Assembly: GCA_907165135.1 (NCBI GenBank)
Contig: OU015568.1
Coordinates: 1,116,001 to 1,180,000, forward strand
Direction of reading: 5' to 3'
From: Oikopleura dioica
Lineage: Eukaryota; Animalia; Chordata
Length of the DNA stretch: 64,000 bases
Below the pieces are notes generated by a model. It did not search any database. It saw only the letters and a program-made list of their open reading frames with translations, and had not been told where the DNA came from. Shown here in pieces: positions 2,923 to 52,969 of the stretch (position 1 is the stretch's first letter; each line of letters starts with the position of its first letter). A program made the translations under genes and the position numbers.

Positions 2923-5179
2923 TTATTTCATAATCATGAAAAGCAAAATTAGAACAAAGCTAGATCTTGAGTTGATTTGAGAAGAATCCGAACTAGTCGT
3001 GGTCGTTGTAGTCGTCGTCGTCGTTGTTGTTGTTGTTGTTCGCGTCGGTTGCAAACAAACAACATTAAACCAATCGTTTTCTACAGTTGTTGTTTCAGTC
3101 ATTATCATTGTTGTTGTCGTTTTTGTCGTCGTTGTTTGATTTCCATAGGTCTTGAAATTCGTTGTCGGCATTTTTGTAAAGAACTCTGTGTGCAAAAGAT
3201 TTGTTTGAACATCTGGATGAAAGGAATAAGGAGCAGTCGATGGTAAAACTGTCGATTCAGGGCCTTTTTCGAGCTTTGCAAAGTTTCGCTATTGACAAAA
3301 AAACTTTAATAAAAAACTTTTCTTGGTCGTATTTTTCAGTATAATAGCCTTCGCACCATCTTATTCGAAAGCCAGTTCCTTCCGTCGGAAGCTGAAATGC
3401 TTTATACGGTGCGATAGAATAATCCGCTCTTTCATTGCCTTCTTTACGGTCAAAAGTTTCAAAATGGACCGTCACATTTTTTTCCACCTTGAAAACAAGG
3501 ACTTTTCCTCTACGAGCGAGGATAGCCGATTGATCTCCTTTCAGAATGAGCTCTTCATTTGCGGTGCAGATATTTAAAACCGTAGCATTGTCGAAAACAA
3601 GAGTCAAATTGGCAGTGTAGCATCCAACAATTTCATGATAATCGAAGTGGAGTTGGTCAAGCACAAGAATCGACCCAGTTTCATCAGCTTTGATTGTCCA
3701 ATTGCAGTCAAGATTCAGGTTATACGGAATATCTTGATCCCAGCCGCTTTCTAGTGGTCATTTTTTACTCTTATCCCCAGGACTGGACAATTCGAAATCC
3801 ACACAAATCTCAACACCCATATTTCGGGAATTTTGCCATCCTGATAAGTCATTAAGGGGGTGGTGGTCGAGACTAAGACTTTTTTTCCAATTTTTTCAAA
3901 AAATTTTTTTTTCTCTGGCTGAAAATAAGTTTAAAAGGGTCCAATTTATGTGGGCGGCTATGTTTGAAAAAAATATTTTCTCGAAAAAATGGTGAAAAAT
4001 TCCTTCAAAGTAGACCGATCTCTTGACCTAAAAAACTCGATCCCCTTATTATTTTTTCGAAATAAAACTTACCGAGAGGAAAGTTTAGTCCCTTAAGCGT
4101 GTGGGCGGCTTAGTTTTAGAAAGTTCACCTTGTTAGAAAAGAAAATAGTAATTGAATGAAAACATGTTGTTTTCTGAAAAATCGTCATTTTCAGTCATTT
4201 TTCAATGAAATTTTCGCAAACATCACAATAATCGTAATTTTTTTAGTTTTTTATTATTAAAATATGATCAAGAAACATAACTTGGCAATGAAAAATCAAT
4301 TTTGAATCGGGTTTAGTGAGAAAAACGCGTTTCAAAACTCCCGAAAATGGTGATTTCATAGCATAAAATCGAAAATAAAGCTGGTCCAATCAAGAGAAGC
4401 TAGAGACCAAAAATGCTCCTTTTTTATCGGGGAATCTAAAATTAATATCAAAATTTTTAAAAGTCGAAAAAAATTTTCTCGACCACCACCCCCTTAAGGC
4501 CGTTTTGGGGTGTTGAGATTTGTGTTGATTTCAAATTGTCCAGCCCTGCTTATCCATTCTGCTGACCATTCCTGTGGCTAAATAAAGCTCTGTTTTCAAG
4601 CTGTATCTCTGCACATTCTCTGTTAACATTCACATAGGATTTTTCAACAGTTACTTGATCTTCGTAATAATATTCGAAATACATCGTAAATTCACTTATA
4701 TCCTCGATTTCAAATGTCATTCTCTTTGGCACGATAATTGATAAGAAGAATTCGCCATTATGCTCAATATACTCTATGTCTCTCCAAGTAAAAATTGGGG
4801 GAGTAAACTTTGGTCCAAACCAATGATGAACTTCGTAAGTCAATCTCTGAGGGTTTCCACCAGGATTAATGAAGATGAATTTCGGATATTTATCCGTCCA
4901 AGAGATCCTTATAGCCATTCTCATCTCCATATCCTCATGTTCATGGTTGTTATTGAACTGGTAGCTGCATTGAAGATCTTTTTCGTATCTCAACCTTGTC
5001 ATGTATTTATCGATGTCGCTACTGGCCCAAGCTGGGTAGTCTTCCGCGTCCAGATTATTTGAAATTTTCACTTTCTTATTCTCTTTCACTGGGCATTCTT
5101 GGATGACTCGGTAGATATAAGGTGAACCCATATCTAATCTCCCATAAATTCCAAGAAATATAAGAATAAACAAAAGCAT
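2923..5179 (-). CDS. Signal peptide + two divergent CUB-like domains + Thr-rich stalk + hydrophobic/GPI-like tail
   Basis: ATG 5179 (MLLFILIFLGIYG). Phase-1 intron 4566-3751 joins ...SHRN to ESGWDQDIPYNLNLDCNWTI (CUB motif). Probable 34-nt intron 3322-3289. Ends TTTTTSSDSSQINSRSSFVLILLFMIMK. Track ORFs 4550-5254, 3257-3664 and 2923-3195 are parts of one gene. Confidence 0.7.
3778..4548. mobile_element. hAT-type non-autonomous element (outer member of a nest)
   Basis: ~45-bp imperfect TIRs (CAGGACTGGACAATT.../...AATTGTCCAGCCCTG). 8-bp TSD CTTATCCC (3770-3777) / CTTATCCA (4549-4556). Confidence 0.8.
3856..4493. mobile_element. TTAA-flanked MITE, copy 1 (nested in the hAT element)
   Basis: 17-bp TIR GGGGGTGGTGGTCGAGA / TCTCGACCACCACCCCC, TTAA on both sides, second copy in opposite orientation at 40201-41097. 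Confidence 0.9.
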
Positions 5180-27620: not shown

Positions 27621-29760
27621 TAAGATACGGAAAGAACAACAGTGAATGCTAGAATTTTAAAATTATTTTTTATTGTCCTGCCAAGTGTAAACTAAAGTTG
27701 TAAATACTATTTCAACTCTTATTTTTGTAAATCTGCTATTCTCTGGTCATCAATTCTTGGATATTGTCCTATTCGAATTCGATGACTTTTTCCGTTTTCC
27801 ATTTTTTGGCCGTCTATAATTTATCGAAAATAAAAATTTTAAAAAGATTTGTGCAACGCTTTAATTTTTCTTCACGAGAAGTTCATTTATTTCATTCAAT
27901 TGCATCTAAAATCTCATCAACTGTCACAATACTATTTATATTATTACTGACATTGAAAGCCTTACAGAGGCTTCAGCTCACACCCAATCGGAGAGCCCCA
28001 GGGGAGCTCAGCAGAAACAGAACAGAGCAGTTTTTTTATTCAAAATGCTAGAGAAAGAACAAATTCAACAATGGCTTGATGATTTGATACCAAAGCTCAA
28101 AAGAAAAACGACAAGAAGTCAAAGATGCAGGCTGATTAGGTCGGTCGAGCGACAAGTTTTCAAGAAAAATGACTTTATTGATTGTACGTGGGTTTGCTTT
28201 CAATTCAAAAGAAACCAGCGTGGCGTTCTCACTGGCTTTGTGTTCGACCAAGAATGTCAAGGAAAAAAGAAACCTCTTACTTCTTGGCCGGCGACCGCTT
28301 TTCAAAATCACCTTATAGAACGAAACAAGTTTCTGCTCGGAAAATTAATCTTCAAAGACCAAGTTCGCGAAGAAACAGCATCTTGGATTTCTCATGGTTC
28401 CAACTTCCTTGACGAGTCTGGTGGAGAAGCTCTCGTTTGCAAAGAAAACACTGCCTTCAACGCGCTTTATCGAATTCAATGTTTTGATCCGGCTCTTTTT
28501 ACAGACAAATTCCGAGATAAAATGCTTTTCCGAATCAATCTTGCTTCTGATTTCAAAAAAGCATCAAATGCGAAAAACAGACAGGAAAATTCAATCCCGG
28601 TTCATAAAAATGTATTGAAAAATATTGCCAACATCGAGATCTTCCATCAATCCGATGAGCAATTGGTCGACTGTCTCGGCTGGATTACAATCATGGAAGA
28701 AGGAAATCAGAACTTGCGATATCTTCTTCGAAGAAATAAGCTGACCATTGAAGAAAGAAGAGGGCTGGCAATTCAATTGCGCGATGGATTGAGTTATCTC
28801 TTCGAAATTGGACTTGAGCACAATGATCAGAAGCTCGAAAATATTGTCCTTTTCGGACCAGAGAAGACTCCAAAGTGGATTGATTTTGGTGTCATGCATG
28901 ACCATACTGGCAGAGAGAGTTACCGGCAAATGGGTTACGTAAGAAGGGGAAGCAAGTTTCGGAATTATCAATCTCTAGCAAGTGGAACTCCTACGTACGA
29001 ATCAAGTTCTTGGCGGGCCGCTGAAAAGTAAAAAGTACACTGTGACAATCGGTAAACGATTGTTCTTCTTTCTCTTTTGTGACTGGAAAACTGCATGGAC
29101 TCTTTTATTCAAGCCGATGGATAGAGATGAGAGAACCAGGGTAACCTCTCTTCTAGAGCATTTCAACGCCTCATTCTTAACCACAAGTCGACAGTACTAT
29201 ACTTGGGATGTCACAGACGATGATTTTAATTCCGTCGTTGAAATCATCTCCCTTCCCCACTCATCGAATAAGTTCGTTTTGGACAGCAAGGTGACAAAAT
29301 CAGTGCAAGTTTCCGAGCTGTGCCAGAGGCTCAAAAGAAACCTTCATCTCGACTTTAGAAATATCACTAAAAATGTTGTTGATCAGAAAGACTCAGATTT
29401 ATGCGTTCCAGTTTCGCTTACCACTCTTATTCGATCAGCAATCAGAGAACGCTGTGGCTTATCAAATGTTCGGATCGTCGAAAAAGTCATGGATGCTTTT
29501 AGTGTCGAGCGAATTCTGTATTTTTTGACGATTAGAATTTATCCTCGAAGTTTGGCTGGAATAAACTTGAATCCAAATCGTCCTGAAATGGAGTGGCAAG
29601 CATTTAATAGTTTCGAAGATATCTTGGAGCGTATGATGAAGCCAACGTTTGCATACGAGCCTGGGTGGAACTGGATCCGAAGAGTTGTTATCCGAGACTT
29701 TTTGAATGCTCCGGATAAAATGAAAAATTTCTTGAAGAATGATGATTGAAATTTATTTTT

Positions 29761-29797
29761 GGGACGCGTTTCGGTCTCAGTGGACCTTCGTCAGCCC
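29761..29797 (-). ncRNA. Minimal type I hammerhead ribozyme (3' pLTR copy)
   Basis: Reverse complement reads GGG-CTGACGA-A-GGTC-CACTGA-GACC-GAAA-CGCG-TC-CC, with all core residues present. Confidence 0.85.
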
Positions 29798-30684
29798 TAA
29801 GTACAGATTTTAAATGAAAGTTCAAAAACAGGAAAATCAGTCTCTCACCTAGAGTGGACAATTTCGAATGAAGGCAGAGATTGAAAACATAAAAACATAC
29901 TTCGCTTTCGCGGGCAGATGTAATGGAGCGCCAGAAGAAAGCGAATTACAAATGCTCCATTACAGAAATTTAACTTCAGCGAATTTGATCTGCTTATTCA
30001 AGCAAGGATCATTTAACTTGATCGAAAACGCTTCACAAAGGACACGGTCTTTGTAGTACGGTTGGTTGGAGATAACAGAAATAAAGTTCTTTTCGAAACA
30101 GAATTTGGTTTTGATTAACGCTCTCGATGTAGTAGGCTTGTATTTTGGAGTGTCTGGCTCACTAAGATATTTATCATATTCCTCTCTGAATTTTGGACAC
30201 TTCAAAGAGTGGAAAAACATAGGACTACGATAACGTGGCTCAAAATGTTCACGAATTCTAGTTCCAAGCTGTCTTTTTGTCTCCCCCTGGTAATCCGTTT
30301 TCCCACATGGACATTGGAAATGGTACACCACTCCACTTTTCTGCTCAATTGGTACCGGGCGCTTCCAGGTTGGGTGCAAACATTGTTCTATTCTCACTGT
30401 TTTCCAACAAAGTCTCAGAAAGAACTTCGGGGTAACTTTTTTAAGAATAGCACGCATTTTGCCGCCAATACTGTCGCACCGGGGACCAGTAAAGCTTGCG
30501 CAAAAATTGTGAACTATTTCCCCTTCCACTTTGTAATTCGCTTTCTTCTGGCGCTCCATTACATCTGCCCGCGAAAGCGAAGTATGTTTTTATGTTTTCA
30601 ATCTCTGCCTTCATTCGAAATTGTCCACTCTAGGTGAGAGACTGATTTTCCTGTTTTTGAACTTTCATTTAAAATCTGTACTTA

Positions 30685-30721
30685 GGGCTGACGAAGGTCC
30701 ACTGAGACCGAAACGCGTCCC
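30685..30721 (+). ncRNA. Minimal type I hammerhead ribozyme (inverted pLTR copy, sense to the host gene)
   Basis: CTGACGA 30688-30694, stem II GGTC/GACC, GAAA 30710-30713, palindromic stem III ACGCGT, GUC cleavage triplet ending at 30719. Confidence 0.85.
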
Positions 30722-31474
30722 AAAAATAAATTTCAATCATCATTCATGAGAGGTCAACACCGACAATCTTTCTTGAAGAAGTTCAAATTTCGCTACGAAA
30801 AAATACTTCTAGGCAGAAACTTCGTATTCCAGCGCCCGTTGTCTGTGACTGGAGCCATTTTTTCTCGGGGTGAAGTTTACCGTCATCAAATGGTGATGGA
30901 CAGAGTGGAAAACGGCGAATACATTCTTCAAAATACACAGGAAGACAAGAAAAATCCTCGTTTGCTGCGGATCTCTCAGAGTCGAAAATATTTTCGGGTT
31001 GTAAATGGTTACTTAGAGTTTGTCAAGAATCCCTGTGAAAGAACTGATCAAACCTGGGAGGAAGATACTTGGTACCTCGGATTAGAAGCATATTCTGTTG
31101 AAATTAATTTTTAGTTACAGACTGTGACTAGAAATTAAGTTAAATAAATCATTTGAGCACTTCCTTTAACCAAGGCTGTTTCTTATTTTTTTTAATTTCG
31201 ATTATGCAAAAGCAAGAAATGCAATAGCGAAGACCAATCGGCTGCCAATAAAATTATGGTTGCATATGATCTGAAAGAAGCATATATCCTTATTGATCCT
31301 TTCTTCTTATTAGTTCAAATAAAATCTAAACGGAAATTGGTTCATGAATTTTAGTGGATTCACATTATTGCCTAGTAAATGTTTATTTATTTGTGTCAAA
31401 ATATATTTGACGCATCAATATTTGCGACCAAATACGGTGCTTTTTTACCTCCTTGAAATTTCAGTTCCTCCAAA

Positions 31475-40064: not shown

Positions 40065-42065
40065 ATGGCTTTCGAGTTAAAAAATATAAAGAAATCGTTA
40101 ACTGATCCGGAAAGACGCACATCTTTAATTTTTTTGACTTTATTCTGTAAGTACCAATCTTTATCTCTAATAAAAGGCTGATATTAAAAGCCTCTCTGAA
40201 GGGGGTGGTGGTCGAGAAAATTTTTTTGGACTTTTTAAAATTTTGATATTATTCTTAGATTCCTTGATAAAAAAGGAGCATTTTTGGTCTCTAGCTTTTT
40301 TTGATTGGACCAACTTTATTTAAGAAAATTTTCGATTTTATACTTTGAAATCGCCATTTTCGGGTGTTTTTCTCACTAAAACCGATTCAAAATTGTTTTT
40401 TCATTGCGAATTTATGTTTCTTGATCATATATCTTTTCGGGTTGACTTCGTTAATAGATCATATGATTTTGTATCGAACGTTTTCGTTTATTGGATAAAC
40501 TTCATCAGGATACTAAACTTAAGATGAACGAAAAAGAAACAGAGGAAAAAGAATACTTTTATGTTGAGAGAGCAGTGTGAAATTGCTAACTGAGGAAAAC
40601 AGAAAAACAAGATCAAAAAATGGCTGTTTTTAGTCGAGCGCCAAGGTGGCCCAAAACATCTATTTCTTGATCATATTTCATTTATAAAAATCTAAAAAAA
40701 TTACGATTATTGTGATGTTTACGAGAATTTCATTGAAAAATGATTGAAATGACGATTTTTTCAGAAAACAACATATTTTCATTCAAATACTATTTTCTTT
40801 TCTAACTGGGTGAACTTTGTAAAACTAAGCCGCCCACACGCACAAGGGTTTAAACTTTCCTCTCGGTAAGTTTTATTCCGAAAAAAATATTAAGGGGATC
40901 GAGTTTTTTAGGTCAAGAGATTGGTCTACTTTGAAGGAATTTTTCACCATTTTTTCGAAAAAATATTTTTTTCAAACATAGCCGCCCACATAAATTGGAC
41001 CCTTTTTAACTTATTTTCAATCAGAGAAAAAAAATTTTTTTTGAAAAAATTGAAGTTTTTTAGGTTGAAAAAAGTCTTAGTCTCGACCACCACCCCCTTA
41101 ATAATAAGAGACTCTCGAATTGAAGAAACCTGAAATTTTTTTCTATCGTCATAAGAAGCTTTTAACATGCATTTTTTCAGGTGGAGGATTGGTTTTCATT
41201 GGACTACACATTTACAGGTGATGGCTCGGCAACCTGCGTCAGGGCTTCTTTTGGACTCTGACTTGAGGTTATGACTTGAGGTTGCCGAGTCGAGTTAAAG
41301 ATCGCTTGACGGCCTTGGCTTTAAATGCGAACACACAAAAATGAACGAAACCATCACGAACCAAATCCTCGAAGACAAAGTCTACTGCGAGGAAACTATG
41401 ATGGTTGGTAATTTACCATATTGTGGTTGTTATAGTTTGGTTCTGAGTCTCAGATACCGGATCTCCTAAAAAGCGCAATCTCATGGGAGAATTAGTAAAA
41501 GTCAATGTCAAATACTCCTTTTTAATCAAACGTAGCCCGATCTCCGCGAATTCATAGACTCTAAGCGAGACAATCACACCTGGTGCGGCTTTCTTCACGA
41601 CAATGTTGGTCACCAGAAGACAAGAGCAAAGTCGCCGATTTATGCTTGCTTTCCAGCCGTCCCAGCTGACATGCAAATCCAAGTGACTTGCCCGATGAAC
41701 TCAACAGTTAGGACCGGACAGGATCGCCGTTTAGGATGGACAGTCAGCCGATGGTGTAATAGCAATGGAACTTGGGATATAAGCAGCTCCCTGCTCCGGA
41801 CTCTTTATTTTATTTCTGATACTTTCGAGAGTAACTATTAAATTTCTCTGTTCAGGAGAGAGAAGGAGACTGCGGATGCCACTACAACGAGAATTGGCAG
41901 AAAAGTCTATTCAAATTGATGCTTCCTTTAATCATTTTCACTTTCTTTACTCTCTGCGCTTACATTCTTAGAAATCGAATTTCGGATTCAATCTGCTCTT
42001 TTCGGCGGAACAGTCAATTCAGCCCCGATCCCTTGATTCTGGACTCACCAGGACGAGAAAATTGA
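40065..42065 (+). CDS. Hydrophobic N-terminus + class-B-GPCR hormone-receptor (HRM)-like domain + single TM, copy A
   Basis: Five exons join in frame. TWCG...ACFPAV....VTCP....SRWCNSNGTWD matches HRM Cys/Trp spacing. TM LMLPLIIFTFFTLCAYIL, then a short tail and stop. The exon-4 donor reads ATAAG (41779) where copy B has GTAAG. Confidence 0.6.
40431..40662 (-). mobile_element. 232-bp hammerhead-bearing retroposed element (solo pLTR / retrozyme-like)
   Basis: 14-bp direct repeats TTTCTTGATCATAT (40417-40430, 40663-40676). MITE copy 1 has the single empty site (~4263-4276). No ORF. Confidence 0.8.
40471..40513 (-). ncRNA. Minimal type I hammerhead ribozyme
   Basis: Reverse complement reads GTATC-CTGATGA-A-GTTTAT-CCA-ATAAAC-GAAA-ACGT-TC-GATAC: 5-bp stem I, 6-bp stem II, palindromic stem III, UUC cleavage triplet. 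Confidence 0.88.
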
Positions 42066-44960: not shown

Positions 44961-47900
44961 TCACGGATAGAAGTAGCAATATTCTTCATAATCAAAGGAA
45001 TACCCACTTGGTAAAGATTCAAAAACTATCGGTCGAATGCAAGGTCCATCATGTCTGTTTATCACTTCCGAAGAGATTACTTTTTCACCATCCCAAGTTG
45101 CTCTTTCAACATAAGTTATGTTACATAACTAAAGTGCGTTCCTATCAAATTTTTAAATAAAGCTTGCTTACTTTGGCGCATAGCCGCCAAAAACAAGGAA
45201 GAATTCGCCGAAATGAATTGATGTCCCGCGATTATTCGGCTAAAGAAATCAAAAAAGAAAGGTTCATCTAACCTTACATGTATCAGAGCTCCAACATGGC
45301 TCCACTGTCCCTCCCGTAATAGATAGACATTCTTGGTGTTTCCCATTTGAGGACCATCGTATAAATATCCACCGATTGTGAGGACTCCGTTGTGAACTGA
45401 GATACACGTATGCGCAGCGATTTCGCGAAGATGAGAAACTGATTCTTGCCAACCACTTAATGGTTTTTCCAATTGCGAATATATTGTTCTGAATTTTATA
45501 AGAGCACCTTGATGCTAGTGTCTCTACTTGATTTGATCGTGTCGCTCCAATTATCATTGCTTTGTCTTCATACAGTGCCATACAGCCAAATTCATGTTTG
45601 ACGCGTGTCGAACTGATAGCTTGAGTTGATTCTCCATCAAAACTTTCGCAAGAATTTGTCGTTCCGTGACATAAAATAACCACTTCGTTATTGAGTGTAA
45701 TTAAAGATCCGGAACTCGCTTTGAATGAATTGAGAAGCTGTATTTTAGTATCTTCGATTTGACAGCCAGATAATTTAGCGATCTATTACATTTATGAATG
45801 AAGGGATCCTAGCTTCTGCTGAATCTCCCACTTCTAGCGTAGTTTGCCTGCTCTCTATATCTGGACGAGTGAAGAAAACGAGTAAAGTATCTTGACGTCT
45901 GTATTTCGAGCTGGAGTAAAATAGAGGTTAATTCACGAACTGCGTGAATTACCGAATGAAGAGAAATACACGGCGGCGACCGAGCAAAGCTCGATCTAGA
46001 TAAGCAAGTGACCTTAGGGGACGAGGGAGTCTAACGAATCTAAGATCCCAATACCCCCCATGAGACTGAAACGTCCTCTAAGGCCAAAGTGTGTGATTTT
46101 TGCAGGAGTATAAGCGTAAGATGAGTAACATGGCAGGTTCGAAACGTCGAGGCAGTCTGATTCGCGTTAAAAAACCCTTTTTTGGGAAAAAGCTTGAATC
46201 AGATGCGAAGTTTTCGTGATGTCCGAGCGGTGATGACATGAAGGAGTAGCTGCACATGTAGAAGAACTCAAAATACGTCGGCGACGGTAAACTGTGATAA
46301 TTTCCGTACCTTTTCAGGCCCCGGTCGATGAATAGGGGACCTGAGTGGGGCAGTACTTGCGCTTAGTCGTATGACTGACCCGAGTTTGTGCCGATGTTTA
46401 GAGGTTCGACGGGCCTCGTTTCACGGTGTGCTCGTTTTGTATGTTTCGGGAGATGAGCTGCTCCAACTTCGGTTAAAGTCGCATTCGGATCGGCGCCGGC
46501 TGAGTATTGACGATCTGGTGAAGACTTTGGACGGGTTCTTTTCTTGCTGTTTTCAGTTGCTGAGCCCTCAACTACTGTTGAATTATGTTTATCGACTGAC
46601 ATATGGCTATTGTCGGGCGCAGCAACCTCCGAAATCACTGTAGCATCAGCTGACATGTCCTCGGCAGTTTCATAAAGAGTACCACCAGAGTACCAGCGAT
46701 CTGACGGCTCGGCTGGAGCTACCGACGAGTCCAAAATAGATGTAGCGGTTGTATCTCCCAGATTTTCCATGTCCAATCGGCGTCTACTTTCCAAAATAGG
46801 TGATAGAGATGATCTTGGCGGTTTTTCCATAGCAACCATCGGAGTCGACGCGACCTGAGAAGATTTCCTCCCCCCATGCGACTTCGACCCGGACTTTTCC
46901 ATCGGTTTGGAAGTAGGAACAGGCGATTTTTGTGGGACTTTCGACTTAACGATTTCGGTTAAATGTGGGAATACGTACTCGGCCTCGTAGTAATCAATCC
47001 AGCGTAAGTCGTGATTTCGTTCTGCGGCGTGAACCACGTGTTCTCGATGGATGAAATCACGTTGTCCTTTTTTATCTTCGACCATGACGACCCAGTCGTT
47101 GCTCGAAACGGCTTTCAGGGGACCTACCCAGCGTTCCTTCTTGCTTTTAGCGTCGGTCAGGTTTTCTCGCTTAATGTACACGACAGCGCCAGCGGGGATT
47201 GGTCTCGGCTTAGGCTCGTTTTTCAGCCTGTGCTCCATGGCTCGGTCAGCAGCTTCCATCGCAGTTTTCACAATGGCTTCCGCCGATTTCGCTAAAGCTC
47301 CCACATTGAGACCAAACACCTGAGGTGTTTCCGCTGTCATTTCTGCGCCAGTAGAGTGGGTGAAAGTACTTTTTCGGCCAAACCAAACTTCTCGCGGTGA
47401 AATTTTCGTGCTTTTGTTTTTCACACTATTGAGCGCGCGCATCACGTGGGGAACGCAGTCGGCCCAAGTTTTTCGACCGGAAGATGAGTTGACCATGCAG
47501 AATAGACTGTTTTTGATAGTCCGATTCGCTCTTTCTGCGAAAGCGTTTGATTGAGGGTGAAATGCGGTACTTATTGTATGTTTTATCTGGTTAAGCTTAC
47601 ACATTTCGTCAATCACGCTTGCGCAGAAGTGGGTACCTCTGTCACTGTGTAGATGTTTCGGCAAGAAATCCATGGGAAGGAAGACCTTGTAGATGAGCGC
47701 TTTTGCAGCGCAGATAGCAGTGTCGGACCGCGTCGGAATGCACCAAGTGTAGCGAGAGAAAGTGTCCGCCACCACCAAATAATACTTGAATCCGCCAGCG
47801 GGAGGCATACAAGCGAAATCGATCTGAATCGATTCGCCAGCTGTTTTTCCACGACGAAGGGTTCCAAGTGGCGGTTTGGTACGAGTTCCAGCAGATCCTT

Positions 47901-50900
47901 TTCTGCGTAGGCAAGGGACGCAGCTGTGGACGTAGTTAGAAACATCGTCTTGAAATGAAGGCCACCAAACGTCCTCTAATCGCTCTAAAGTCCGCGGCTC
48001 GCCCAGATGACCGGACAAGTCGTGAGCTAGAAAGAGAAAGTGACTTTTACCGCTTCCGGTACCACCGCCCGCGCGCCAGATTTGAATTGACACATCAAGC
48101 ACCCGGTAGTGTTATCCAGGAACAGAGCTTTTTCCATCTTGAGTAGAGACGATTGTCGGTGGTCGGAGTCCTTCACCAGCGATTTTATGTCCAGTGGCTC
48201 CTTACCAGATTCCAGAAAAGTGATGATTGCACTCAGAGCAGAGTCCTCCCTTTGATAGTCCAGAATGTTATTATAATTCGCTGACACCAACGGAATCTCC
48301 ATTGGCGCCGCGATAGCCTTGACGTTTACCTTATGTATCTTCACCTCTGATAAAGTGATTTTCTCCGGAAACTGATTTTCGTTCCAGAAAGGGACGAAGA
48401 CACGTACTGGTGAATTCTTGTCGATTTCGTACTCGCGACCAACGGGAAACTCAGAGTCGTATCCAAGTGATTTGTCGTCCTCGCCAGGTCTGCGGCTCAT
48501 AAAGTCGGCGAATTGATTTTCTGATCCCTTGATGTAGACAATGTGAAAATCGAATTCTTCCAATCGGCTTTGCCATCGGCTTATTTTAGAATTCTTGAAC
48601 TTCTTTTTGTGTAGGAAGATCAAAGATCGGTGGTCTGTGTGAATCTGAAAGAATCTACCTTTCAGGAGCTTTTCCAGTCGCTCGCAGCACCAGACAATGC
48701 TAAACATTTCCTTTTCTGAAGTGTTCCATTTTCTTTCAGCTTTGTTGAAGGTGTGGGAAATCGCGCTTACTAGGTGCACTCTCCCGCCATACTCTTGTAG
48801 CAGGACGCCACCCGCTGCGTACAGGCTCGCGTCTGTGTAGAGATGAAAAGACTCGTCAAAGTTAGGAAAACTTATGACTGGAGTCTCGGAGAGTCGTCGT
48901 TGAATTTCCTTGAGCGCCAAATCCGCTTCTTTGGTCCACTTGAAACAATTTGTTTCGTTCGCCGAATTTCGAACATCGTTTATGGGCTTCATTCTGCTCG
49001 AGAAGCAACCGGATGAAATAGCTTCGCCCATTTTCGTTTCTAGAAAACCTCGGATCCAATTCAATGACCCGATTAATGAAGCTAACTCCTTTTGGGAGCG
49101 TGGGGGTTTCATCTGACGAAGAGCGGAGACTTGCGCAGGGTCCGGTTTGATTCCATCTTCGTTGATGATTCGGCCCAAAAAGTGAGCTTCGGATTGTAGG
49201 AAAGAGCACTTTTCGCCCTTGAGTTTAGCGTTAAACTTGCGGAGCGCGATGAATAGGTTTCGGAGAGTGTTGTAATAGCAGCTGAAAGTCTTCCCAAAAC
49301 ACACTATGTCATCGATATAAGAAAGCATCTTTTTCCTGGTGGGGCTTGAGTCGAGAATTGTGTTTACGACGCGCGAGAATATATTCCCCGAGCATCGATA
49401 ACCGAATGGTAGTCTGCAGAAGGCGTAAGATTTCCCACCCCACTGGAAGGAAGTCTTGTACCTGTCGCTTTTCTTTACAGGGCACTGCCAATATCCACTT
49501 CGTAGATCAACTGTGGCGAAAAACTTATTGCCCGGTCCAATGTTCGCAATCGTATCCTCCATGCTTGGGAGATGGTAAGGGTCGGATTTGTCGGAGAGGC
49601 ATTTGTTCAGGCTGTTTTTGTAGTTGATGCAGAAGCGCATTTCCCCAGATTTCTTAGGAATAGGCAATACCGGGCTGTTAAACCCTTTCTGGTCTTTGAT
49701 CTCTTCTATTATTTTCGTTTCGAGCAGTTCGGAGATGTGATCGCTGACCTGACCATGAAAAGCTTGCGGAATCGGGTGTTGACTGATGTTTCGACTCGTA
49801 CCATCAGTCGGGATTTCGATCTCGAACGGGAATTCACCCATTTTTTGACCGTCGCAGCCGAATCTGTCGTCGAATTCCAAACACAGCTCGGCGACCACCT
49901 TCTTTTGCCCCGGGTCGGCGTTTGCTGGTAGGGTAATTCCGAGTTTTTGCTTCGCTAGCTGAATGGGGCACCTGGCTGCGTTCTTGTTAGGTGCGTCCAG
50001 CTTTGGGACTTTTGGTGGCGGTTGAGTGCGGGATCGATCGCTATCCTTGACCGCTGATCTAGTAGTCAAGTATTTCTTGATTTTGGTCCGCTTCACTCCG
50101 TCCAGCTTCACCACTTGAGTCTCAGTTTGTGTGAAGGCTTCGTTGTAGCAAAATGAGAGAGTACGATTCTTATTGTCGACTGTGAAGCTGTCCGTCATCG
50201 CATTCTCTAGTATATCGCGGCCCAGTAGACTTGGGTATTTACTGCCTGGCATAATGGTGAGATTCAGGGAGAATGCAGGGCCACCATTGAATGATAAGCG
50301 GCAGGGAAGGATACCCATCGGCTGCTCGGCGGGAATATTTGGGCTGAAACCGGTGACCTTGAAGGGACAGGGCTTCAGCATCTGGAGAAATTCGTCGGGA
50401 ACGTAAGCAGCGGACAGACAGGAGGACTCGGCTCCGCTGTCGACTTCCATCGATACGTCAAAACTTTTAGAGCCCGTAATGATGGTAGCCGAAGCGAAAT
50501 AAGCCTTTCCTGGTCGCTTCTTCTTCACTGTGTAAAAGTGAACGTCGAATGGTTGGAAATCTTCAACGTTCTTAGTCGTATTTATCTTCTTGGATTCTGG
50601 TTGTTTATCGTCTTTCCCATCCTTAGAATCGTTGCTGGCGCGCTTAGCATTCTTCTTCTTTTTGTTCTTATTTCTGTTGAAGTGCTGGGAGACGGTCGCG
50701 CTGTCAACTCGATTCTGTCTTGTGGATTGGGCGAGACGGCAGAGTTCGTTGATATCGTAAACTTTTGATAGGCTTGGAAGGATTGCGTTGAAAACGTCTG
50801 GTTCTTCTTTCCTAAGATTCAAGTACAGCATCATCGTCGAGAATATGTCAAATATTTCATCGACCCCGGCGTCGGCTGACTTCTCTTGTCGGTAAGAGTT

Positions 50901-52969
50901 CAAAGTCGCTTGCTTCGCCTCGTTCATCTTTTGCAAGACGTTGGCGGTGTAGTGTGCAAACGGCTTCGAATGGTCGTATTCGACGTCGAAAACTTCGCTT
51001 AGCTTCAGTAAGTAGTGACTCTTCGCGGCGAATGATTTCTCTAGCAGCGCCTTGGCCGATTTCCAGTCTTGACAATTCAGAAATTCGGTTCCAAGTGAGC
51101 GTTCGATGTTCAAGTCGAAGTGGCTGTACACTGCTGCGATGAAAGGCTGTTCACGTGAAGGTCTGTCGCGGACGTAGGCGCGGTGATAAATGTCGGCTCT
51201 GCCCAAGAAGGTGTTGAAAGATGTGTTGCATGCGGCGTCCAGCTTCGGCAAGTCTTGGACGTGACGAGACCAGGTAGTGGCCACCCATGCTTCTTCTCTC
51301 ATTGTCGCATTCGTAGAGTCTTTTCCTTGATCGAGCTCGCAGGTAAGAAGCGTTGTACTGAGCTGTTCTAATTTTACTCTGCTTTCTGTGATCAAGGGCT
51401 CTAGGCTTGGCTTTAGTGATTCGTCATTTCGCACTTGTTCTTCGAGGTAGTTTACTCGATCGTTTATGCTTCTTATTTCGGTGACGGTTTCTAGCAGTGA
51501 TTTGTTCGCCGCCATAGCTCGAAATATATCGGCAGTAAGGGTTTATGGGCCTTGGATTACCTTTCAGGCCCTCAGAAAATACTGCGACTAAAAGTCGCAA
51601 TATGATGAGCTGAGGTGCCTTTTTGCGCAAACGCCCGACGATTTCTCTGTCCAGCGATTGTCGAAATTTCAAGGTCTGGTCCAAGGGTCGATTCTTCGTA
51701 AACTTCTCTCGATTTTTGGTGAAAAGTGGCGAAAGAATTATGTTTTTCTCAGTATTTTAGGTTTTCCCCGGCGTGCGTGCGTGGTTGCGTGGGCGCGACT
51801 TTCGGCGCGTGGGTCGTGGTGGCGCTCGTGTGGTGGCGCTCGCTCGGGGTGGTGTTGGTGTGGTGCGGCGCGGAAAATTCTCTGAGTGGAGTTTCTCCGG
51901 CGGCGCGGTGGCGGTTGGTGATTCGGTTCCCCTCGACTCCGCTGACGGCCAATCAGCGTCCAAGTTGCGAAACTTCGGTTGTCGATGGCGGAAAATTTAC
52001 CTTTTCTCCAACGGGACTACTCTGATACCACTGAAGGGATCCTAGCTTCTGCTGAATCTCCCACTTCTAGCGTAGTTTGCCTGCTCTCTATATCTGGACG
52101 AGTGAAGAAAACGAGTAAAGTATCTTGACGTCTGTATTTCGAGCTGGAGTAAAATAGAGGTTAATTCACGAACTGCGTGAATTACCGAATGAAGAGAAAT
52201 ACACGGCGGCGACCGAGCAAAGCTCGATCTAGATAAGCAAGTGACCTTAGGGGACGAGGGAGTCTAACGAATCTAAGATCCCAATATGAACTTAAATTGT
52301 AGATAAAAACCTTTTTGGTCGATTGAGTTATTGAGCCAAAGAAATAAATTTCTCCTTTGAGCAAGGAGCTGCCAGATCCCTCCAGATACGGGTTTGTCCC
52401 ATCAAGCGGGAAGTCAAATTGACGATCCTCCTAAAAACTGATATAAAACGAATAACGGTTTTTCATTTACTTTGAATTCTCCATCGGCAGAAATAATGTA
52501 GTTGAAACTTGCGTAGCCAAGATTCTCAATATTATAAGGCTGACTTTGGCAAATTACTGTAACGTGGGGCTGACAACTGTATCTGCTTCGGCAAGAGCAG
52601 TCTGCGGGACATTTTGTCATGCACAGACAAATGCTGTTTGAGCATCCATCGCAACCATTCGGATAATAGCGAAAACAAGGACAGGAGGAATAGCACTCTT
52701 CAAAATCGTTATCAAATATAAAATTTCCTTTAACCAGTGAATTGGGAAGAACACTCAATCTCACATGAAGCCGTACTACAATTACTAAGGCAAGTTGTAT
52801 ATTCTTGCGCACATTGATTGTAGCAGATTTCCCCGATTTCGGCATCGCTTTGAAAAAAAAAAGAAAAAAATTTTTTAGATCAAATCGTTCAAACTTACGG
52901 ACAATCAGAGTCAAATCCAGTCTGCTGACCAAAAGCGAAAGATATTAATAAAATTTTTTGATGTAACAT
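44961..52969 (-). CDS. Secreted Cys-rich + kelch-like beta-propeller protein; one intron holds the LTR element
   Basis: ATG 52969. CYNQC..C..C..CSSCPC...PNGCDGC module. Intron 52310-45783 joins STKK|IAKLSGC in frame. Kelch-like GG..Y, W and FGG motifs. Stop at 44961. Confidence 0.7.
45799..46053 (-). repeat. 3' LTR
   Basis: No difference from 52032-52286 found by eye. Termini TA...CA on the element strand. Confidence 0.95.
46054..46059 (-). other. Polypurine tract (GGGGGG) abutting the 3' LTR
   Basis: CCCCCC on the + strand directly next to the LTR. Confidence 0.75.
46363..48102 (-). CDS. Integrase (HHCC, DDE core, GPY/F) with a long Ser/Pro/Thr-rich C-terminal extension
   Basis: AHDLSGHLG...CVPC, IQIDF, HSDRG, AERAN, RWVGP. 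Confidence 0.93.
   Translation of the reverse strand: MLDVSIQIWRAGGGTGSGKSHFLFLAHDLSGHLGEPRTLERLEDVWWPSFQDDVSNYVHSCVPCLRRKGSAGTRTKPPLGTLRRGKTAGESIQIDFACMPPAGGFKYYLVVADTFSRYTWCIPTRSDTAICAAKALIYKVFLPMDFLPKHLHSDRGTHFCASVIDEMCKLNQIKHTISTAFHPQSNAFAERANRTIKNSLFCMVNSSSGRKTWADCVPHVMRALNSVKNKSTKISPREVWFGRKSTFTHSTGAEMTAETPQVFGLNVGALAKSAEAIVKTAMEAADRAMEHRLKNEPKPRPIPAGAVVYIKRENLTDAKSKKERWVGPLKAVSSNDWVVMVEDKKGQRDFIHREHVVHAAERNHDLRWIDYYEAEYVFPHLTEIVKSKVPQKSPVPTSKPMEKSGSKSHGGRKSSQVASTPMVAMEKPPRSSLSPILESRRRLDMENLGDTTATSILDSSVAPAEPSDRWYSGGTLYETAEDMSADATVISEVAAPDNSHMSVDKHNSTVVEGSATENSKKRTRPKSSPDRQYSAGADPNATLTEVGAAHLPKHTKRAHRETRPVEPLNIGTNSGQSYD
48027..51515 (-). CDS. Gag-protease-RT-RNase H polyprotein
   Basis: VDSGAE (protease), RFCINYK, DLRSGYWQ, LPFG, YIDD (RT), YTDAS and IHTDHRSL (RNase H). 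Gag is in frame with Pol. Confidence 0.96.
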   Translation of the reverse strand: MAANKSLLETVTEIRSINDRVNYLEEQVRNDESLKPSLEPLITESRVKLEQLSTTLLTCELDQGKDSTNATMREEAWVATTWSRHVQDLPKLDAACNTSFNTFLGRADIYHRAYVRDRPSREQPFIAAVYSHFDLNIERSLGTEFLNCQDWKSAKALLEKSFAAKSHYLLKLSEVFDVEYDHSKPFAHYTANVLQKMNEAKQATLNSYRQEKSADAGVDEIFDIFSTMMLYLNLRKEEPDVFNAILPSLSKVYDINELCRLAQSTRQNRVDSATVSQHFNRNKNKKKKNAKRASNDSKDGKDDKQPESKKINTTKNVEDFQPFDVHFYTVKKKRPGKAYFASATIITGSKSFDVSMEVDSGAESSCLSAAYVPDEFLQMLKPCPFKVTGFSPNIPAEQPMGILPCRLSFNGGPAFSLNLTIMPGSKYPSLLGRDILENAMTDSFTVDNKNRTLSFCYNEAFTQTETQVVKLDGVKRTKIKKYLTTRSAVKDSDRSRTQPPPKVPKLDAPNKNAARCPIQLAKQKLGITLPANADPGQKKVVAELCLEFDDRFGCDGQKMGEFPFEIEIPTDGTSRNISQHPIPQAFHGQVSDHISELLETKIIEEIKDQKGFNSPVLPIPKKSGEMRFCINYKNSLNKCLSDKSDPYHLPSMEDTIANIGPGNKFFATVDLRSGYWQCPVKKSDRYKTSFQWGGKSYAFCRLPFGYRCSGNIFSRVVNTILDSSPTRKKMLSYIDDIVCFGKTFSCYYNTLRNLFIALRKFNAKLKGEKCSFLQSEAHFLGRIINEDGIKPDPAQVSALRQMKPPRSQKELASLIGSLNWIRGFLETKMGEAISSGCFSSRMKPINDVRNSANETNCFKWTKEADLALKEIQRRLSETPVISFPNFDESFHLYTDASLYAAGGVLLQEYGGRVHLVSAISHTFNKAERKWNTSEKEMFSIVWCCERLEKLLKGRFFQIHTDHRSLIFLHKKKFKNSKISRWQSRLEEFDFHIVYIKGSENQFADFMSRRPGEDDKSLGYDSEFPVGREYEIDKNSPVRVFVPFWNENQFPEKITLSEVKIHKVNVKAIAAPMEIPLVSANYNNILDYQREDSALSAIITFLESGKEPLDIKSLVKDSDHRQSSLLKMEKALFLDNTTGCLMCQFKSGARAVVPEAVKVTFSF
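52020..52030 (-). other. Primer-binding site TGGTATCAGAG
   Basis: Lies 1 nt after the 5' LTR and begins TGG, complementary to tRNA CCA. Resembles initiator tRNA-Met PBS. Confidence 0.85.
52032..52286 (-). repeat. 5' LTR
   Basis: Direct repeat of 45799-46053. Confidence 0.95.

Follow-up and report, generated by a model that had tools for sequence, protein, structure and literature searches.

The 232-bp segment inserted into MITE copy 2 of the window, the whole stretch of 64,000 nucleotides analyzed here, is very probably the solo long arm of a young Penelope-like element (PLE) that encodes a reverse transcriptase (RT), and comprises a pseudo-LTR with an embedded hammerhead (q5-208) followed by a tail (q209-234). 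Positions in the insert are numbered on its sense strand, the minus strand of the window, with q being 40663 minus the window coordinate, such that q1 corresponds to 40662 and q232 to 40431. Its identification as the pseudo-LTR and tail of a coding PLE stems from the observation that arms 99-100% identical to it flank an open reading frame (ORF) with an RT and a GIY-YIG-like block. The insert is a dead-on-arrival fragment of a recently active PLE lodged in an old MITE, an ordinary by-product and no new ribozyme-defined element.

Table. Features of the window (positions in window coordinates) and the longest young copies of the PLE family of the insert (positions within the respective loci)
Feature	Position	Strand	Basis or remarks
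MITE copy 1	3856-4493	+	TTAA on both sides; uninterrupted target at 4262-4275
MITE copy 2, inverted relative to copy 1	40201-41097	+	GGGGGTGGTGGTCGAG terminal inverted repeats; TTAA on the right, degenerate TGAA on the left
Target-site duplication, left copy, TTTCTTGATCATAT	40417-40430		alignment with copy 1
Target-site duplication, right copy	40663-40676		alignment with copy 1
Insert, very probably the long arm (pseudo-LTR and tail) of a young PLE family	40431-40662	-	identity to PLE arms
Tail, q209-232, in one arm only per insertion	40431-40454	-	comparison of arm ends; tail concept from PMC8557442 and PMC11167929
Minimal type-I hammerhead of the PLE kind, predicted cleavage 40476/40475	40471-40513	-	core pattern, stems and features given in PMC4209133
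TAGA (q1-4), between the duplication and the repeat proper, which starts at q5	40659-40662	-	junction comparison
29.7-kb PLE	29737-30768		arms 29737-29952 and 30530-30745; tail ~30746-30768; duplication TTTCTTGAAGAA
Longest young copy, L031	3326-5112
Longest young copy, L032	2822-4665	-
Longest young copy, L033	3267-5018

The alignment of MITE copy 2 (40190-41110, plus strand) with the reverse complement of copy 1 (3846-4503) is broken by one large gap, which accommodates the 232 bp along with a second occurrence of the 14-mer TTTCTTGATCATAT, both of them in copy 2. Aligned from end to end, copy 2 and the reverse-complemented copy 1 are identical in 81% of the columns, and the 14-mer is present once in the latter and twice in the former. 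An earlier reading of this DNA from its letters alone (the sequence-only reading) had described both the insertion with its 14-bp duplication and an empty site in the same window, and these descriptions are confirmed by the alignment. Beyond the window, a genome search with a 291-bp empty-site probe recovered no fewer than 20 further MITE copies that run uninterrupted across the insertion site, the site being split only in copy 2 of the window. As these copies are continuous, the empty state of copy 1 is ancestral and not a product of deletion, and the insert is a gain in copy 2. Together with its duplications, the insert lies at C1:1156417-1156676 of the genome. The final 2-3 nucleotides of the left duplication (ATA in the sense of the element) could be derived from the element, since the long arms of its other copies end in q232 followed by AT(A); the duplication would then measure 11-14 bp.

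The host MITE is ~640 bp long with GGGGG...CCCCC termini (3852-4497 and 40197-41101 in the window), and its terminal inverted repeats and TTAA flanks place it, by its ends, in the piggyBac style. At least 35 matches to it were found in the genome, and it is an old family, as its copies share only 66-89% identity. Searches with the insert and with the empty-site probe detected the insert in no other copy of the MITE, and, given this and the age of the family, the suggestion that the insert now travels inside the MITE finds no support. As had been claimed, the insert is non-coding, with no ORF of more than 60 aa overlapping it; no tRNA-like head or structure was found in it either.

The genome searched comprises 64,281,565 bases in 19 pieces, the longest of 17,092,476 and another of 16,158,756 bases, and it yielded ~50 matches to the 232-bp insert, many of them 99-100% identical, copy and ORF searches giving lower bounds in this assembly of one merged haplotype. 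The segment is hence not single-copy. Nearly all the matches form pairs of inverted arms lying 0.1-2.8 kb apart, and the junctions indicate that each pair is a single insertion with an AT-rich target duplication of 8-13 bp. Over 225-228 nt the window insert matches arms of PLE insertions at other genomic sites with 100% identity. Including the window insert and L023, 14 insertions with duplications of 8-14 bp at AT-rich sites were recognized. The common plan of the two-armed insertions, contained within one duplication, is an inverted long arm (~q5-8 to q232 plus AT(A)), a body truncated to varying extents at its 5' end, and a short arm (q5 to q208-213), the last being contiguous with the body in 10 of 12 cases. 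Thirteen inverted-arm structures were seen, two of which (L031 and L040) carry an additional partial direct repeat.

The RT encoded by the bodies of these insertions contains the YVDD motif and matches RVT_1 at E 8e-7, its 29.4 bits falling just short of the curated cut-off of 29.6. Its database relatives (36-71% identity) measure 700-850 aa and are RT proteins carrying PF00078. C-terminal to the RT lies a GIY-YIG-like block, VYSWKC-DCKAQYIGQS...R..EH, which can be aligned with a stretch of the database relative P0013 to which Pfam gives a sub-threshold GIY-YIG score (E 6.5e-4); Pfam itself makes no GIY-YIG call in the ORF of this family, nor in that of the 29.7-kb element. An older full-length copy (L040), with arms 93-94% identical, displays the order inverted long arm, partial direct repeat, q232-ATACC-ATG, and an ORF equivalent of ~850 aa with one frameshift. 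The starts of L031-L033, the longest of the young copies, all fall within 22 nt, at a point ~720 nt beyond the ATG of the full-length copy, and these three have open frames of at most 583-594 aa devoid of the N-terminal domain, the copies of 99-100% identity lacking ~245-270 N-terminal residues. Their common start could be a preferred stop of the RT, an internal start of the RNA or the mark of a short sub-family. The autonomous PLE with the same pseudo-LTR that the sequence-only reading had looked to was thus found in part: coding copies with the RT and the GIY-YIG-like block exist, but an intact full-length ORF of the family was not found in the assembly. The enzyme that served the insert may have come from an unassembled master copy, from an N-terminally short ORF or from another PLE family; several other PLE families in the genome have open frames of 840-850 aa. 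One locus of the family holds two copies with identical flanks, L034a and L034b (L034:2332-3029 and L034:5557-6253; G000:C3:548331-549028 and 551556-552252), which represent a segmental duplication. Between the two, the body and the inner parts of the arms are in opposite orientation, and this looks like an inversion through recombination between the inverted arms.

The comparison of arm ends also delineates the tail. Every insertion examined combines an arm ending at q208-213 with one that reaches q232 plus AT(A), the difference being a tail of 24-28 nt that terminates just before the ATG of the element. The tail of the insert includes the word GTCAAC (40441-40446, minus strand), and GTCAA(Y) recurs 8-14 nt before the tail end in at least 8 PLE families that are otherwise unalignable, all with tails ending in (A/G)AT. 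Tails with this word were read in the window at 40441-40446 (minus strand) and 30746-30768 (plus strand), and at L044, L046, L047, L049, L053, L058, L063, L067 and L071. Its recurrence makes GTCAAY a candidate signal for recognition by the RT or for internal initiation.

The hammerhead within the pseudo-LTR had been described as a well-formed type I motif on the minus strand, and its stems are as claimed. It reads GUAUC (q150-154), CUGAUGA (q155-161), one unpaired A, GUUUAU-CCA-AUAAAC, GAAA, ACGU, UC and GAUAC (q188-192), with a stem I of 5 bp (GUAUC/GAUAC) and a stem II of 6 bp (GUUUAU/AUAAAC) closed by the loop CCA. Cleavage is predicted after q187, near the 3' end of the insert as had been proposed, albeit at 45 nt from it rather than about 40. 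That PLE repeats contain hammerheads has been known since 2014, when Cervera and De la Pena (PMC4209133) defined four hallmarks of the metazoan PLE versions, and all four are present in the motif of the insert. It has the unpaired base 5' of helix II, a palindromic helix III and the CUGANGA...GAAA core. It further resembles the minimal hammerheads of that study in its CUGAYGA and GAAA core elements, the G10.1-C11.1 pair, the long helix II (6 bp) and short helix I (5 bp), and in that many such motifs are either solitary or closely paired on opposite strands; judged by its nucleotides, it appears to differ in nothing essential. In three arms of the same PLE family (L007 and two other loci; CTGATGAAATTTAT...) G10.1 is replaced by A, which breaks the G10.1-C11.1 pair.

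Unlike the hammerheads captured by the curated Rfam models, the motif of the insert is matched by none of them, whether the threshold is the gathering score or E<=10. We do not take this silence as evidence against the motif, as the helix III hairpin expected by those models is missing from minimal PLE hammerheads. The pattern CTGAYGA-N9-28-CGAAA-NNNN-TC is matched 195 times in the genome, compared with 16 matches to the reversed control, and two sub-patterns have 57 against 0 and 45 against 0. At least nine hammerhead types were distinguished among the loci read, those of families with an unpaired A, apart from the two families in the window, being read from the pattern output only, and a core-anchored count of pairs revealed compensatory changes across all three helices. 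Thus, seven stem II sequences were seen (including GUUUAU/AUAAAC, GAUUU/AAAUC, GCC/GGC, GGAG/CUCC, GGUC/GACC and GUCC/GGAC), along with five types of stem I and five helix III hexamers (AACGUU, AAGCUU, ACAUGU, ACGCGU and AGUACU), every one of which is palindromic. Given the excess of matches and the compensatory changes in all three helices, the motif is more than a chance occurrence. In vitro, single PLE motifs showed no detectable cleavage, and dimers were cleaved weakly (PMC4209133). With a helix III of 1 bp and a palindromic loop (AACGUU), the ribozyme would be expected to act as a dimer, and the monomer in the solo copy is expected to be nearly inactive.

A second PLE in the window, at 29.7 kb, has a different hammerhead-bearing repeat. 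Its 216-nt, perfectly complementary arms enclose a 577-bp body, the right arm alone bears a tail, and the body encodes a 199-aa, GIY-YIG-like C-terminal fragment (29960-30559, minus strand). The claim that it belongs to a family distinct from that of the insert is upheld, in that no similarity exists outside the ribozyme core, and RT copies flanked by its hammerhead type have 38% protein identity to the family of the insert. The targets of the two share the same first 8 nt (TTTCTTGA). The window also contains two overlapping ORFs of 1162 and 579 aa (46363-51515, minus strand) with protease, RT, RNase H and integrase motifs, by which they are assigned to a predicted Ty3/gypsy-type LTR retroelement. 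Across the genome, we found 61 matches to PLE RTs and ~180 hammerhead motifs above background, and both kinds of match are enriched on the 2.9-Mb piece C3, which would be the Y-specific region.

Any account of the insert has to explain why an arm should occur alone. There are only two solo arms in the genome, that of the window and an independent one at L023 (C5:6762063-6762287), which is 93% identical, has the same extent and is flanked by a 12-bp duplication. A candidate solo arm of another family (L065) was rejected, as it runs on into the body of an element. The sequence-only reading had taken the 232-bp unit for a non-autonomous, ribozyme-defined family of its own, SINE-like or retrozyme-like and copied in trans by a Penelope RT. 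The unit is indeed non-coding and inserted alone with a target duplication; L023 supplies a second solo copy, the parent family offers no intact full-length ORF in the assembly, and a 2026 preprint derives animal retrozymes from PLE pseudo-LTRs. In being short, non-coding and equipped with a type-I hammerhead, the insert also resembles animal non-LTR retrozymes and Sm-alpha-like hammerhead SINEs. These, however, are multi-copy and usually tandem units bounded by cleavage, whereas the insert is a single unit that ends elsewhere and is identical to a coding arm. Its 100% identity to the arms of coding copies leaves no separate lineage, two solo arms stand against ~12 independent two-armed insertions, and neither tandem arrays nor a tRNA-like head were seen. 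Its ends (q1/5 and q232-234) bear no relation to the cleavage site between q187 and q188. Every arm holds an intact, uncleaved hammerhead and no junction falls at the cleavage site, so that ends set by the hammerhead are rejected and the term ribozyme-defined is inapplicable. We therefore consider a family of this kind highly improbable: what stands of the proposed mobilization by a Penelope RT is the PLE origin, attested by arms that flank an RT ORF, and not a separate non-coding family. Mobilization of the insert in trans by the enzyme of another family could nevertheless have taken place, given that an intact ORF of its own family was not found in the assembly.

Solo LTRs of LTR elements arise by recombination, and one might likewise derive the insert from a complete or two-armed PLE that lost its body and second arm through deletion or through recombination between direct pseudo-LTRs. 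The partial direct repeats in L031 and L040 and the arm-to-arm recombination suggested by the L034 inversion lend this idea some substance. We nonetheless think it unlikely to a high degree. The arms are normally inverted, and recombination between them would invert the body instead of deleting it, which speaks against an origin of the solo arm from this process. Furthermore, the 100% identity to other copies leaves little time for two successive events, both sides of the duplication are intact, TAGA being all that separates it from q5, and the solo arm of L023 has the same precise structure. That the segment was original to the MITE, with copy 1 a deletion derivative, is suggested by nothing beyond the comparison of the two copies in the window. 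It is refuted by the at least 20 MITE copies that are continuous at the site, none of which contains the segment; moreover, the 14-bp sequence is duplicated at the segment and single in copy 1, and elsewhere the segment occurs only as PLE arms. This derivation can be set aside with near certainty. A reading of the inverted arms as those of a DNA transposon or foldback element was rejected because an RT ORF is present, the arms are unequal and the duplications vary in length.

For the solo long arm of a PLE, the most likely mechanism is target-primed reverse transcription from the outer of two internal starts. The critical details come from the junctions. The TAGA at q1-4 is reverse-complementary to TCTA (q205-208), the 4 nt with which the short arm ends, TAGAG is found in L038 where the truncated body meets the long arm, and L023 has TA|G at its junction. 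These junctions suggest an RNA 5' end at ~q5 and two sites at which the RT would start. On the model of Frangieh et al. 2024, the sequence of events might have been as follows: 1) the putative GIY-YIG nuclease would cut the AT-rich target in the MITE with a stagger of ~12-14 bp. 2) One DNA end would prime the RT at the outer internal site (~q234, just upstream of the ATG), on a template RNA left uncleaved by its own hammerhead. 3) The cDNA primed there would extend to the 5' end of the RNA (~q5). 4) The other DNA end would prime at the inner site (q208), halt after 4 nt (TAGA) and be joined to the first cDNA. Under this scheme, TAGA would represent a 4-nt abortive start of the second arm, and the cap might be the source of the extra G found beside q5 on two occasions. 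An 8-nt match of the target (ATATGATC) to q199-206 was taken to be fortuitous, as it lies away from any junction.

Canonical endonuclease-positive PLEs with pseudo-LTRs reportedly carry an inverted truncated copy and a one-sided tail (Arkhipova 2006; Craig et al. 2021; Frangieh et al. 2024). The family of the insert is like such elements (Penelope/Poseidon, Neptune and Nematis) in having an RT followed by a C-terminal GIY-YIG-like block, inverted pseudo-LTR arms, heavy 5' truncation, a one-sided tail and a hammerhead in the pseudo-LTR, as well as duplications of variable length at AT-rich targets. The copy in the window differs from canonical insertions in being an arm alone. Craig et al. 2021 (PMC8557442) described PLE insertions as heavily 5'-truncated, often with an inverted, 5'-truncated copy at the 5' end that gives rise to inverted repeats, and with a tail of 30-40 bp at one end only; the tail of the present family, at 24-28 nt, is shorter. 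For a PLE of Anolis, Frangieh et al. 2024 (PMC11167929) showed that in vitro the protein both cleaves and extends the two DNA strands, and that the RT starts at two adjacent internal sites of the RNA that have no homology to the target. The tail corresponds to the interval separating these two starts, and uncleaved RNA is the main substrate (PMC11167929). The family of the insert agrees with this scheme in every point, its inner start being placed at q208-213 and its outer start at ~q234. In the Anolis element the outer start lies ~110 nt into the ORF, whereas in the present family it would lie just upstream of the ATG. Severely 5'-truncated or twin-primed LINEs offer a further parallel, being dead-on-arrival retrocopies with a target duplication, in which priming by both DNA ends generates inverted segments. 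In contrast to truncated LINEs, the ends of the PLE arms are fixed (~q5 to q234), and initiation is internal rather than at a 3' poly(A).

A truncated PLE nested in a MITE is a routine finding and, as stated, matters little by itself. However, the young set of PLEs to which it belongs displays, in a genome, the two-start tail signature that had until now been mapped in vitro for one lizard element. The paper on the OKI2018_I69 assembly (PMC8008620) reported PLEs as almost absent, with 44% of the repeats unclassified; if the genome searched is that of Oikopleura dioica OKI2018_I69, its repeat annotation understates the PLEs, which comprise at least 10 families and have been active recently. The GTCAAY word, conserved in the tails of unalignable families, is amenable to testing by mutation. 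More tentatively, as a reading somewhat less likely than not, we suggest that PLE solo arms might be in vivo footprints of an unusual integration pathway, in which both cut ends prime at two fixed internal sites marked by the GUCAAY tail, the inner start often aborting after exactly 4 nt and the outer running off at the capped 5' end. Such solo arms might also represent the earliest stage of animal retrozymes. If the footprint reading is true, the ~14 young insertions in this small genome would constitute a natural data set for the mechanism of PLE integration.
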